This document shows positions 6,997 through 51,287 of a stretch of 64,000 nucleotides of DNA, piece after piece. Where the stretch lies: the sequence record MN871445.1; one strand, 5' to 3'. The notes beneath the pieces were generated by a model, which was not told the DNA's origin, ran no database searches, and saw nothing but the letters and a program-made list of their open reading frames with translations. Numbering within the stretch: the first letter of the stretch is position 1; each line of letters begins with the position of its first letter. The position numbers and the translations under genes are program-made.

Positions 6997-7255
6997 TAAA
7001 AAAATACTATTTAGGATTACAATTTGAGTACACTTGGGGATGAAACATAAAAGACCTAAGGAAACGTTCCGTGCGAAGCACTCCACGTTACTATCACTAA
7101 TTAAAAAAGATAAAATAAATATACTTAGTAAGAAAGAAAAAAGATCTTAGATTTGGGGGTTTGGGGGAGGGGTAGGAGGAGCGAAGCTCCTCCGTAGGGG
7201 AGGGCCATAAAACATGATCGTGTGGGGAAGGGAAGTAAACCCTTCCCAAATATGC
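6997..7255. other. Structured non-coding element A (GNA mini-hairpins, A-tract, G-tracts)
   Basis: No credible ORF. Two GCGAAGC mini-hairpins (7071-7081, 7175-7193), A-rich tract 7100-7142, five G-runs 7155-7204, hairpin 7225-7247 followed by AAATATGC; layout shared with 48573-48737. Confidence 0.7.
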
Positions 7256-40758: not shown

Positions 40759-41370
40759 ATGATTACGGTAGATATTCTTAAATTGATTGGTGCAGCGCAA
40801 GTAGCTGTAGCCCATCCGCAAGGAAGCTTATTTGTTGAAACATTTAACGGCATTACGGGAACCACGACATTGGCAGCAACCGTATCGGGTACGGAAGCTC
40901 TTGCAGCATTCGAAAAATTGGATGTAACAAATCAGGTTAAAGTCAATGCTATTTTTGACCAGTATCGCAAAGTAATAACAGGTTGTGGTGCAACTACGGT
41001 ATTTGCTAATGGCGTACATCGTCAACGTAACTACCGTAGTTTCATGGCACTGATGATGGCGGTTGCTTTAACGATCATGGCGGTCACTATCGTCGCCATT
41101 GAATGTTATATCGGCATCATGACTAAGACTCAATTGGAAAGCGGTCAGTTTACGGTTCCGTTGATGTGCCTTGCATTGGTGGTGTGGAGTTATAATGGAC
41201 TGCTGACAAAAGAAAACCGGGAAGCCATCGCTGCTGGGTTGGCTCGAGCACCCAGTGGTTTTGTTAACAGTTTTCTGGATTCTATCCGCGGACGTAATCA
41301 GTACCAGACCACGATGCAACAACAACCCGCGCCTCAGCCGGACGACCCACAAAATCAAAGACCACAATAA
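40759..41370 (+). CDS. Two-transmembrane-helix membrane protein
   Basis: Two hydrophobic segments and a Q/P-rich C-terminal tail. Confidence 0.7.
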   Translation: MITVDILKLIGAAQVAVAHPQGSLFVETFNGITGTTTLAATVSGTEALAAFEKLDVTNQVKVNAIFDQYRKVITGCGATTVFANGVHRQRNYRSFMALMMAVALTIMAVTIVAIECYIGIMTKTQLESGQFTVPLMCLALVVWSYNGLLTKENREAIAAGLARAPSGFVNSFLDSIRGRNQYQTTMQQQPAPQPDDPQNQRPQ

Positions 41371-47499: not shown

Positions 47500-47587
47500 C
47501 GTGTAATCTATTTTAAGAAGACCAAAAATACTTTGATGTAACCGCCCAACTCTATTATAATAACGTCGTATAATTGTTCTTAGGCAG

Positions 47588-48535
47588 TTATACGTTAGGC
47601 GCATCGATATTTGTTTGGGATATGACTTTATTGGCGGTAAGGGTTTTCGTAACGGTAACATCTTGTTCCATGGCGACATCCCGTTTCATGGTCACTTCGC
47701 CATCGATAACTGCTTTACCGTCATAACCATTTTCGGTGGTTGTCGACAGTGAACCCACTTTCACCAATCCTGTAAATTCACTCAACGGACACTCGACTTT
47801 CATGCTGTCTGCTTTAACCTTGAAGTCTTTGCAGGTGAAGTCAATAGTTTTAGCTTCCACCGATAATGTTTCAGGCGCAACCATCGCTAGGTTGTTTTTA
47901 TTCAACTCTACTTTGGTGCCAGTACTCAATTGAGCCAACATCGCTAAAGCCACGGCGTCTAAACTAAATTCATGGCCGTTATCCGTAACAACATTCAATA
48001 CCCCTTCTTTGGTATTCACCTGTATTGTCCAGGCTACAGGCTCACCATTACTTTTATTAGTTGCTAAGGTAACCTGTCCGGTATGTGTAGATACCTCTGT
48101 GTAATATGAATTTTCTGGTGATGGTTCTGGGTTATCTCCGTCGGGATTGGGGTTGTTGTTATAAACATGCGTCACTGTTTCTTGCCTACGCAAGTTATTG
48201 TCCAAACCCGATTCACGCCAGTAATACTTATCTTGGTTAGCAAACTGATATAGCTTTACACGTTCACCACGACGTACGTCTGGTGGAGTTGTTCGGTTAC
48301 CCGTTTCTGGGTACCAGGTTGCGGTAAGAGTAATGTCAGTCATGGTGGAGACTTCATAATTCTTACCTTCTGCATCGGTACCTTTGGCCTGAATAATGGA
48401 CGGGTTAGATCTAAACTCCCCATCCATATGTGGGACCCACTCTATCGGGGTAACCAGGATATCTCTCGAACCTATCTCTTTATGTTGGGTTACCCGACCT
48501 ATTCCGATTTCACGTAAACCGCCTTCATACGTCAT
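47588..48535 (-). CDS. Baseplate central spike (gpV/gp5-like; phiKZ gp164-like)
   Basis: OB-fold-like N-terminus (TPPDVRRGERVKLY), C-terminal beta-helix-type repeats; divergent from sbcC. Confidence 0.75.
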   Translation of the reverse strand: MTYEGGLREIGIGRVTQHKEIGSRDILVTPIEWVPHMDGEFRSNPSIIQAKGTDAEGKNYEVSTMTDITLTATWYPETGNRTTPPDVRRGERVKLYQFANQDKYYWRESGLDNNLRRQETVTHVYNNNPNPDGDNPEPSPENSYYTEVSTHTGQVTLATNKSNGEPVAWTIQVNTKEGVLNVVTDNGHEFSLDAVALAMLAQLSTGTKVELNKNNLAMVAPETLSVEAKTIDFTCKDFKVKADSMKVECPLSEFTGLVKVGSLSTTTENGYDGKAVIDGEVTMKRDVAMEQDVTVTKTLTANKVISQTNIDAPNV

Positions 48536-48572
48536 GGTAATTCCTCTTTTACTGGAGTAAATACAAATAATG

Positions 48573-48737
48573 TAAAAAAATACTGGCTTGACTAATTCAA
48601 TGCCCTATTACTTAGGTTTGGACCTTCCTGCCACGTAGTGGCGTTTATGATCTTAATATAAAAGAGAGATCATAGAAATAAGTATATTAAGATCAGATCC
48701 GGGGATATACCCATGGAGGTATATCCCTTATATGCCG
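48573..48737. other. Structured non-coding element B (homologous to 6997-7255)
   Basis: TAAAAAAATACT, TATTAC (48606), GCCAC-GTA-GTGGC (48630-48642), A-rich tract, AAGATCAGATCCGGGG, hairpin 48702-48727 then TTATATGCCG. Confidence 0.65.
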
Positions 48738-48836
48738 TCTAAACCTAAAAGATAGGATACTGTCAGATAATGTCCAAGCTAAAATTATATCGATGAGAAA
48801 CATATTTTAGTAGCCCATCACGGTGAGTAATTAACC

Positions 48837-51287
48837 ATGGAATTAGATTCTCTTTTATTGGTGGGGTATAGACCCTTCCTGTTGAACAACATCAATGAAT
48901 TACTCTATACCCCACAGAGTGCGTATCAAATCATCTTAGGGATGAACGGGTGTGGTAAATCTTCACTGATGCGTGAATTGAGTCCTCTGCCTGCGACTCC
49001 CGGGGATTTTACTGAAGGTGGGGTAAAGAAATGGATTGGTCGTCACGAAGGGAACCAATACGAACTGAATAGTGAAATCGGTAAACGAAGTGCGAAGCAC
49101 TCTTTTATTTGTAACGGGGAAGAATTAAACCCTGGCGGTACCGGCGCCGTACAGAAAGAATTAGTACAACAACATTTTAAATTAACCCCCGAAATACACC
49201 AGGTACTGCTTGGTAAAACCCGGGTTAAATTCACTAACATGGCACCGGCTAAACGTCAAGAGTGGTTTCAACTCATCGCTCCAGTCGACATCAGTATTGC
49301 TCGCAAACAGTATCAATACTTTCTTAGTAAGGGACGTTCTCTTACAGAAGTCGAAAAACATCAAAAGCAAGAGTTGGTGGAGGCCAGTAAACGTTTAGGT
49401 GATGGGGTTGCGGTTCGATTACTTGAAGAAGAAATCCAAAAGTTAAGAGAACAAGCCCAGATTTATATGGAGGCCAAAGTTCCCGTCACCACGACGCAAG
49501 CAATCAGTTTATCCGAACTGGAGAAAGCCAGTCGAGACGTACTTAATTTTATTCCGGATACAGACTACCCAACTACCGATAGTGTCATGTTGGGAATTGC
49601 AGCCACTGAGCAGAAAATTGATGGCTTGGAGCGTCGCTACAAGGAACACGTTGACGCGTGCGTTAGAATTGAAAAACAGATTGCAGAAATTGGTGACATT
49701 GGTCATTTAGATATTTCATTGCTGATGGAACAATTAGGTCAGTTAGCCGCTGAATTAGCAGTGTGCTCGGTCAGGGAACATGTTGTTCCAGAATCTCAGG
49801 TCAATTCTGTTATTGATATGGTTTCTGCTAGAATGACGGAAATTACCCAAGTACTCGGAACCATGCCAGTTAAACGAGATGATTTTACTAAGGAGCAGTG
49901 GACCTCTCGTGGCGATATTTTAAATCGGTTGATGACGACTATTCAGAGTGACGAATACAAATTAACCAATCTTCAAAATCAGTTATATCAAGTAGAGTCG
50001 GCGCAATCGGTTAAATGCCCAGCATGTGACCATCAATTTAAACCCGGTATCGAGCACAATGCAGCAGACCACATTAAATCACTTATAGAAAGCACCAATT
50101 TAAGCATACTCACCAATAAGGCTCAAGCAGATAAACAGCGAGAATACCTGGATGAGTTTGAGGCATGGTACGGACCAGCCAAACAACTTGCAAGTTTGTT
50201 GAATAGCGAAAGCATGCATTATGTTAAAGAGATGCTGTATGGGTTGGATGATTTATGGACTGCCCCCCGAAAGGCTATTCCTGAGTTGATGTCTTGGCTC
50301 AATACCTTGAAAGAATATCAGCACTATTTATCTTTACGTGATGCCCATGCAACTACCCAAAAAACCTACAGCATGGCAGTAGATGCTACCGCCAAAGCAA
50401 AACGCCAACAGGTGGATGCGTATAAACAACAATACGCAGATGAAGAACTTGCATTATCTAAAGTGCAGTCAAACCTATTAGGCTGTAGGGAAACCTTAAC
50501 CCGGTTAATTCAAATTAAACGTAGATACGTGGAGTTTGAACAGAACCAAACTGTCCTGTTACAGCAATACAATAAAACCATCGATGCTGAGATCGCCTAC
50601 GCAAATCGTGGCTTTAATGCCATTCTTGATAATTACATTGGGGAGATACATAGTCGATTGGGTCTGTTGGAAAATCAACGGATTGCTTTGATACAGGCCG
50701 CAAGTCATGTAGAGAGATTGAATGCGTCTTTAAAAGTATTGTCGCAAGATATAGAGGCATGTCAGGTATTGGCCTCTATTCTTTCCCCCAAGGATGGTTT
50801 TATCGCAGAACAGTTATCAACTTCAGTAAATGCACTGTGCGATGCCATGAATGCGGTTATTCGAAACGTTTGGACTTACGACCTAGAAATATTGCCGTGT
50901 GGAGTAGATTCAGGGGAGCTTAATTATAAATTCCCCTTACGAGTCTACGGTAATGATGAATTGCCTCTCGACGATATCTGTGAAGGGAGTGAGTCTCAAT
51001 GTGAGATGGTCAATTTAGCATTTAGATTGATTGTAATGGCATATTTATCGCTTGCCGGATATCCGCTTTATTTGGATGAACTTGGTAGGGAATTTGATGA
51101 AACCCATGGAAGTCGAGTGATGCAATATTTGAAATTATTGGTTGACTCCCAACAAGTGAGTCAGGTATTTCTTATCTCACATAACCCGGCGTTACATAGC
51201 GTATTTACATTAGCGGATGTAAACATCATCAACACAACCAATATCACCCTTCCGGCGGAGTATAATACCTGCATGACGATACAATAA
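48837..51287 (+). CDS. sbcC: SbcC/Rad50-like SMC ATPase
   Basis: Walker A GMNGCGKS, long coiled coils, CPAC zinc hook, signature SESQ, Walker B LYLDE, H-loop LISH. Confidence 0.93.
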   Translation: MELDSLLLVGYRPFLLNNINELLYTPQSAYQIILGMNGCGKSSLMRELSPLPATPGDFTEGGVKKWIGRHEGNQYELNSEIGKRSAKHSFICNGEELNPGGTGAVQKELVQQHFKLTPEIHQVLLGKTRVKFTNMAPAKRQEWFQLIAPVDISIARKQYQYFLSKGRSLTEVEKHQKQELVEASKRLGDGVAVRLLEEEIQKLREQAQIYMEAKVPVTTTQAISLSELEKASRDVLNFIPDTDYPTTDSVMLGIAATEQKIDGLERRYKEHVDACVRIEKQIAEIGDIGHLDISLLMEQLGQLAAELAVCSVREHVVPESQVNSVIDMVSARMTEITQVLGTMPVKRDDFTKEQWTSRGDILNRLMTTIQSDEYKLTNLQNQLYQVESAQSVKCPACDHQFKPGIEHNAADHIKSLIESTNLSILTNKAQADKQREYLDEFEAWYGPAKQLASLLNSESMHYVKEMLYGLDDLWTAPRKAIPELMSWLNTLKEYQHYLSLRDAHATTQKTYSMAVDATAKAKRQQVDAYKQQYADEELALSKVQSNLLGCRETLTRLIQIKRRYVEFEQNQTVLLQQYNKTIDAEIAYANRGFNAILDNYIGEIHSRLGLLENQRIALIQAASHVERLNASLKVLSQDIEACQVLASILSPKDGFIAEQLSTSVNALCDAMNAVIRNVWTYDLEILPCGVDSGELNYKFPLRVYGNDELPLDDICEGSESQCEMVNLAFRLIVMAYLSLAGYPLYLDELGREFDETHGSRVMQYLKLLVDSQQVSQVFLISHNPALHSVFTLADVNIINTTNITLPAEYNTCMTIQ

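Follow-up and report, generated by a model that had tools for sequence, protein, structure and literature searches.

In the jumbo phage KpHz_2 the spike and SbcC-like genes diverge from a 301-bp spacer, which is most likely a transcription control region assembled from the standard signals of the phiKZ-like phage family. In the arrangement that we favour, at about even confidence, a promoter box would be followed by a structured leader RNA of ~120-135 nt and a phiKZ-type terminator ahead of the SbcC-like gene, and the TATG in the terminator tail might start the mRNA as well. The terminator with no gene to end is most likely a standard family terminator sitting in a promoter-proximal leader, judged by its sequence, and such an arrangement is already known in phiKZ-like phages. 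By itself the spacer, here called element B, is routine annotation, one of four candidate leader RNAs.

The phage, the locus and its sequence features

The window is a 64,000-nt stretch of sequence record MN871445.1. A blastn search with 701 bases around the hairpin identified it as the Serratia/Klebsiella jumbo phage KpHz_2 (100% match). The same 701 bases are 98.6% identical in the Klebsiella phage vB_KvM-Eowyn (Eowyn) and 87% identical in KpGz_1, which is 84.4% identical to Eowyn over the whole genome. No related records beyond these three were returned by blastn from the phage collection, and no more distant relatives of the spacer were found in protein-anchored scans of IMG/VR and metagenome contigs or in two DNA-pattern scans of viral contigs. 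Phages of the KpHz_2/Eowyn type are phiKZ-like, nucleus-forming jumbo phages, because the Eowyn genome encodes chimallin (nuclear shell), PhuZ tubulin and split RNA polymerase subunits. Members of the phiKZ-like family transcribe their genomes with their own virion and non-virion polymerases and, to our knowledge, do not use the host polymerase.

The spacer and its neighbours contain the following features (window coordinates):

47588-48535, minus strand: baseplate/spike gene, homologue of phiKZ gp164; the Eowyn counterpart, gp163, is annotated in RefSeq as 'baseplate assembly protein; ORF164'
48573-48584, plus strand: TAAAAAAATACT box, in which TACT follows an A-rich run; candidate middle promoter element of the phiKZ type; exact match, fully kept in KpGz_1
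48604-48623, plus strand: outer inverted repeat, 5' arm CCTATTACTTAGGTTTGGAC; 20 nt, 80% complementary to 48737-48756, paired by RNAalifold
48606-48611, plus strand: TATTAC, within the outer 5' arm, in the region of the expected transcript start
48629-48649, plus strand: H1, TGCCAC-GTA-GTGGCG, a small hairpin of 6 pairs (-7.1 kcal/mol) with TTTATG after it; unchanged across KpHz_2, Eowyn and KpGz_1
48648-48660 with 48683-48695, plus strand: H2, AT-rich inverted repeat whose 13-bp arms TGATCTTAATATA/TATATTAAGATCA pair perfectly around a 22-nt loop, from the inverted-repeat scan
48667-48674, minus strand: TATGATCT, at which the spike/baseplate gene may have a late (TATG) start site, a putative function assigned from the motif
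48689-48704, plus strand: AAGATCAGATCCGGGG motif, seen on direct check
48701-48728, plus strand: H3, terminator-type hairpin GGGGATATACC-CATGGA-GGTATATCCCT; 10 perfect pairs and a G.T pair, 11 bp in all
48702-48711/48718-48727, plus strand: perfect 10-bp arms of H3, GGGATATACC/GGTATATCCC, from the inverted-repeat scan
48729-48738, plus strand: tail TATATGCCGT, with TATG at 48731-48734; invariant in KpGz_1
48737-48756, plus strand: outer inverted repeat, 3' arm GTCTAAACCTAAAAGATAGG, from the inverted-repeat scan and folding
48837-51287, plus strand: SbcC-like ATPase gene, homologue of phiKZ gp165 by tblastn, downstream of the leader

Direct inspection confirmed each motif that an earlier note had listed for element B, at its coordinates, and the gene coordinates agree with its description of the flanking genes as divergent, with spike on the minus and the SbcC-like gene on the plus strand. 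It had also remarked that the hairpin ends no gene. This is correct: 48561-48836 contains no plus-strand ORF of at least 20 aa, and the nearest approach to one is a 54-aa plus-strand frame that lies nearly all within the spike gene and ends at 48560. The ORFs of the leader itself are one 12-codon frame that has no ribosome-binding site and one 36-aa minus-strand frame. Searches with tblastn returned homologues of the SbcC-like gene in 290 jumbo-phage records, many of them labelled SbcC-like; the protein matches SMC_N weakly, at 32.8 bits, which is under the cut-off. The phiKZ gp164/gp165 pair is likewise divergent. Since that homologous junction measures only 64 bp, the ~190-nt structured stretch would be a lineage-specific insertion between the SbcC-like gene and its upstream signals.

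The proposed sequence of events is as follows. The A-rich TACT box at 48573-48584 would be used by a phage RNA polymerase as a promoter element of the middle type, with transcription starting ~20-35 nt downstream, at ~48605-48616. The transcript would fold into hairpins H1, H2 and H3. H3 and TATATGCCGT would act as an intrinsic terminator at which a large share of transcripts stop, giving the ~120-135 nt leader RNA, and the remaining transcripts would read through into the SbcC-like gene. The non-virion RNA polymerase may also start at the TATG of the tail; a small-RNA end and an mRNA start (with a 103-nt 5'UTR) would then be fused in one module. From the box to the SbcC-like ATG, which follows the terminator by 103 nt, there is no plus-strand ORF of at least 20 aa; the promoter is a motif-only prediction. 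That the box is an active promoter, the start and end points of the RNA and a regulatory function for it, if any, are all inferred from the sequence.

The hairpin+TATG family and the role of the tail

Hairpins followed by TATG are abundant in this phage type. Counting stems of at least 7 bp with at least 4 G-C pairs and TATG within a few bases after them, we detected 112 strand-modules in Eowyn, compared with 11-19 in five shuffled genomes. The usual stem is GGGAGGGC-GAAA/TTTC-GCCCTCCC, and the commonest 8-mer tails are TATGCCGT (20 of the 112 modules) and TATGTTGT (14 of the 112). Between Eowyn and KpGz_1 the stems of the modules are 93%, the loops 60-69% and the TATG 94-100% identical. By sequence, the family matches the published intrinsic-terminator consensus of phiKZ, in which YTTATKYYGT follows a hairpin. 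As a side observation, TATG flanks most terminator hairpins on either side (CATA-hairpin-TATG), including hairpins that lie between two plus-strand genes (for example Eowyn 143764/143790, 77912/77938 and 26120/26146).

H3 is a typical member of this family. Its tail TATATGCCGT contains TATGCCGT, the commonest 8-mer, and its folding energy of -16.5 kcal/mol is close to the family median of -16.9. It combines a stable stem-loop with a TTAT-K-YY-GT-type tail, as phiKZ-type terminators do, and it has evolved as the family has, with a conserved stem, a freely varying loop and an unchanged TATG: stem and tail are the same in KpHz_2, Eowyn and KpGz_1, and the loop is different in each. Because the tail is the commonest one, the stem energy lies at the median and the pattern of conservation is shared, we predict with high confidence that H3 and its tail are a functional member of the hairpin+TATG family. 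H1 with its TTTATG is such a terminator module in miniature; its GCCAC-GTA-GTGGC core occupies 48630-48642.

The placement of H3 is rare. In Eowyn, 58 modules come after a co-oriented gene, and only four plus-strand modules have no co-oriented gene end within 120 nt upstream: element B, element A (the other box-containing spacer of the window), one bidirectional terminator and one weak case. None of the ~18 other divergent (-/+) junctions in the genome has a hairpin+TATG module.

One alternative requires no RNA from the spacer. Here H1 and H3 would be insulating terminators only, which stop leaked plus-strand transcripts running antisense to spike and so shield the SbcC-like gene; the leakage would come from the upstream tail-fibre operon or from a AAAAATACT box at 47524-47532. 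The phage has and conserves TATG-tailed hairpins on both strands, also at sites where no gene requires them, which suggests policing of read-through and antisense transcription, and plus-strand genes end 211 nt before the terminator at Eowyn 135212-135234. A possible source of antisense transcription is the A5TACT box AAAAATACT at Eowyn 135265, just past the bidirectional tail-fibre terminator, which on the plus strand is aimed into the spike gene, antisense to it. However, the ~18 other divergent junctions do without such a module, and the insulator leaves unexplained both the conserved box and the ~100 nt of conserved sequence before H3. We therefore regard insulation as the sole function of the hairpins as unlikely.

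A second alternative turns on the tail. The non-virion RNA polymerase (nvRNAP) of phiKZ binds TATG single-stranded in the non-template strand and starts at its G. The TATG at 48731-48734 could thus be the late or middle nvRNAP start of the SbcC-like mRNA and nothing more; the hairpin would be no more than its companion or insulator, and no RNA would end there. Late structural genes in Eowyn carry a hairpin-less WWTATG(C/T) 27-100 nt before their start codons, and the TATG after H3 has the same WWTATGC context. It is one of only two plus-strand TATG in the spacer, lying 103 nt before the ATG (the other, at 48646-48649, follows H1), and the equivalent TATG of element A is the sole plausible late start for the neck operon. 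Against this, typical late promoters are hairpin-less, as is the phiKZ late promoter P119L; TATG tails at convergent gene ends and on antisense sides, neither of which requires a promoter, are conserved to the same degree; and the region upstream of phiKZ gp165 has no TATG. A promoter that is accompanied by, but makes no use of, a terminator is in our view a rather improbable explanation.

In the leader-RNA reading the H3 TATG could have a dual role, as the end of the leader RNA and as the start of the mRNA, which is plausible on sequence grounds. One observation counts against this reading and makes the role of the tail uncertain: TATG is kept to the same extent on hairpin sides with no gene opposite, on antisense sides within plus-strand gene arrays and at convergent gene ends, so its function at hairpins should be independent of a downstream gene. 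A more speculative idea, which we think has only a slim chance of being right, is that hairpin and TATG form a single 'punctuation' unit for the polymerase: its TATG pocket for the non-template strand would cause elongating polymerase to pause or be released at the hairpin, and transcription could restart from there. This suggestion comes from the identity of the tail with the TATG bound by the non-virion polymerase in the non-template strand. If it were true, elements A and B would be places where a small-RNA end and an mRNA start are physically fused. A tail that equals the polymerase's TATG start motif and is kept on both strands offers a testable lead on termination and reinitiation by the sigma-less polymerases of jumbo phages.

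The A-rich TACT box, the predicted leader and its folding

The middle promoters of phiKZ have been described as a TACT centred at about -22 with an A-rich repeat before it (Wicke 2020, PMC8244752), and as AAanTTACc at about -24, with late promoters consisting of TATG whose G is +1 (Yakunina 2015, PMC4666361; Wicke 2020, PMC8244752). The TAAAAAAATACT box of element B fits the middle-promoter description and would be a likelier promoter element than the TATTAC from which the earlier note had its RNA start. The early promoter box of phiKZ is TATATTAC, and the sequence TATATTACT is strongly enriched in Eowyn intergenic DNA. A weight matrix built from 16 Eowyn early-promoter sites separated 24 sites at 23 bits or more from all else in Eowyn, at 10.6 bits or less. 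The TATTAC/CCTATTACT box scored -8.2 bits (rank ~1540) and was rejected as an early promoter; the start that the note had proposed at TATTAC is not supported. A search for host sigma-70 promoters found 3 sites compared with 3.3 expected, none of them on the plus strand of the spacer.

The 24 early-type promoters have the consensus CAAAA..(8-10 nt)..TATATTACT...GA, and none is in the RefSeq annotation; examples are those upstream of chimallin (Eowyn 52108) and of an RNA polymerase subunit (65281) and those at 101423/101501. Most Eowyn early promoters lie 37-137 nt from their genes.

The 12-mer TAAAAAAATACT is indeed identical, as claimed, at 6997 and 48573, but within the window alone this recurrence is not beyond chance: at up to one mismatch 0.91 matches are expected, and 23 of 100 shuffles had two or more. 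It gains weight because A6-7TACT recurs ahead of long leaders across the genome. There are six occurrences in Eowyn, and four of the six are in four of the longest intergenic regions, aimed at the next gene (Eowyn 40846, 48317, 94737, which is element A, and 136315, which is element B). Each of these four boxes precedes 185-314 nt that contain no ORF, and the stretches after them are locally well conserved with respect to KpGz_1.

Element B had been called a second copy of element A. Pairwise local alignments of the four box-containing spacers contradict this, with only (A)AT(R)TAAAAAAATACT(GG) shared. Homology of A and B as repeats was rejected: their best alignment is the 16-nt box, no other segment scored above shuffled controls, and what they have in common amounts to those 12-16 nt. 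Their other resemblances (a triloop hairpin, an A-rich stretch, AGAT..GGGG and a hairpin with TATG) are short or generic. The leaders also differ in composition. Runs of G4-G5 tracts on the plus strand, prone to G-quadruplex or R-loop formation, are present at Eowyn 40846-41037 and in element A (window 6997-7255), and these two leaders are 95-98% conserved with respect to KpGz_1. Element B and the Eowyn 48317 leader lack such series of tracts, and instead share CCCTATT..TTAG.AGGT.

This shared motif bears on the start site, and element B departs in its spacing from the other three boxes. The middle-promoter sequence element is present in element B, a motif-based prediction in which the motif spacing is ~12 nt longer than at Eowyn 48317. 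Since CCCTATT..TTAG.AGGT is that much farther from the box in B, its start site is uncertain (near 48605 or 48615), which counts against the reading that we favour. Element B also has no TATG 22 nt downstream of the box.

The leader at Eowyn 48317-48502 has a AAAAAATACT box and, ~85 nt later, GCCTCTCC-TTCG-GGAGAGGC followed by T7, a classical intrinsic terminator with no TATG; from there it is 75 nt to the start of gp086, the homologue of phiKZ ORF050. By sequence it is the cleanest small-RNA candidate among the four box leaders.

The spacer of element B is predicted to fold stably. The plus strand folds at -52 kcal/mol (z = -4.7 compared with shuffles) and the minus strand at -50.9 kcal/mol (z = -4.4), nearly equal values because the signal arises from inverted repeats in the DNA. 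Folding energy alone thus indicates neither the strand nor the level, RNA structure or DNA palindrome, at which the repeats act. None of the 49 pairs has a compensatory change among the three genomes. Two one-sided A>G changes in KpGz_1, in the outer repeat at 48604-48623, preserve U.G pairs on the plus strand, and the G.U pairs together with these two changes would fit pairing in a plus-strand RNA. As the outer stem (48604-48623 with 48737-48756) encloses the terminator tail, it could form only in RNA that reads past H3. The arms of H2 are conserved in KpGz_1 and its loop contains indels, despite which AGATCATA is retained; in the inverted-repeat scan the segment 48667-48674 within that loop is also an alternative 8-bp pairing partner of 48646-48653.

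Conservation of the spacer is moderately raised at its core and not exceptional. Between Eowyn and KpGz_1, the identity of the core is 91.9% compared with a genome mean of 84.4%, which ~16% of 150-bp windows equal or better; the whole spacer, at 87.7%, does not stand out from intergenic DNA in general (87.5%), and 48747-48836 is at 81%. We accordingly rejected exceptional conservation as an argument. A search of the whole window against Rfam returned no hits at the gathering threshold, and at E<=5 the locus had one chance snoRNA match of 15 bits. ARAGORN detected no tRNA or tmRNA.

The remaining alternative is that the nested palindromes and four GATC sites act in the DNA itself, whether in replication or recombination, by binding a protein or as a switch sensitive to Dam. 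The phage has a gene for a DNA adenine methylase (gp017), and GATC is scarce (448 observed compared with 1017 expected from base composition), yet four sites fall within 60 bp here (48649-48699), a cluster tied for densest with one coding site at Eowyn 156811. The inverted repeats are nested, and the two strands fold equally well. Moreover, the H3 loop of KpHz_2, CATGGA at 48712-48717, is the exact reverse complement of TCCATG in Eowyn (136412-136417) between identical stems, an inversion that amounts to a flip of the palindrome centre and so to an event at the DNA level. (The KpGz_1 loop is 8 nt long and resembles the Eowyn orientation.) Nevertheless, two of the four GATC sites come from one inverted repeat, element A has no such cluster, cumulative GC skew has no turning point here, the wobble positions suit plus-strand RNA only, and straightforward transcriptional readings exist for all of the signals, making a DNA-level element very improbable.

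The earlier note had proposed a small RNA, an attenuator or a DNA structure controlling sbcC. A small RNA or attenuator is the best-supported reading; the DNA structure has no specific support, because ~100 such palindromes are spread over the genome.

Comparison with known systems

The results show that the terminator consensus and the promoter classes of phiKZ also hold in a distant enterobacterial genus, and the census of 24 early promoters, ~100 hairpin+TATG modules and four A-rich-TACT boxes should be useful for engineering therapeutic phages and for transcript mapping.

The comparison with T4 origins of the oriF/oriG type, in which a middle promoter is followed by a downstream unwinding element and replication is primed by an R-loop, is one of layout only: element B too has an AT-rich palindromic stretch, downstream of a candidate middle-type promoter. 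It has only one G4 run, however, and its likeness to an origin ends with the layout. GC skew, which has no turning point at element B, gave no hint of a replication origin there.

With the middle and late promoters of phiKZ, the likeness is in the motifs. The 12-mer has TACT at the end of an A-rich run, and the TATG of the tail is A/T-flanked as it is upstream of late genes. Unlike in phiKZ, there are only four such boxes in Eowyn, all before long leaders, and B has no TATG 22 nt downstream of its box.

The phiKZ terminator consensus, 5'-BCCYCCCCHWWDGGGRRGGBYTTATKYYGT-3', was derived from 61 mapped terminators (Putzeys et al. 2024, Microlife, PMC10914365). The modules here likewise consist of a GC-containing stem-loop and then a TTAT-G-YY-GT tail, occur in dozens per genome and are in some cases bidirectional between convergent genes. 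They differ in having TATG as the tail almost without exception, present and conserved to the left and right of most hairpins, gene-less sides included. H3 differs further, in that its stem GGGGATATACC is not of the usual GGGAGGGC type and its tail is offset by two bases (TTATATGCCGT).

Close parallels are also found in RNAs formed by premature termination in 5'UTRs. In phiKZ, a 71-nt RNA before PHIKZ221 and a 141-nt RNA before PHIKZ302 were confirmed by northern blot (PMC10914365), and 201phi2-1 has 11 sRNAs of the 5'UTR premature-termination type (PMC10914365, PMC11512511). These leaders and the predicted one of element B share a layout: a promoter (in B a candidate), a structured non-coding RNA of <250 nt, a family terminator, 60-100 nt and then the gene, all conserved within the genus. 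They differ in that there is no sequence similarity, and in that element B lies at a divergent junction, which in phiKZ measures 64 bp and has no leader.

The terminator region of the PHIKZ221 leader is reported to abort >90% of transcripts. Its stem is CATATAC(T)CC...GG(G)GTATATG, with TTATGTTGT in the loop; the ATATAC/GTATAT core resembles the H3 stem, which may be coincidence. Upstream of PHIKZ302, our own reading of the phiKZ sequence found a AAAACTACC box ~24 nt before a TATG, several hairpins, and GCCTCCC-TTCG-GGGAGGC followed by TTTAT. The AAAACTACC box of this northern-confirmed leader RNA resembles the box of element B.
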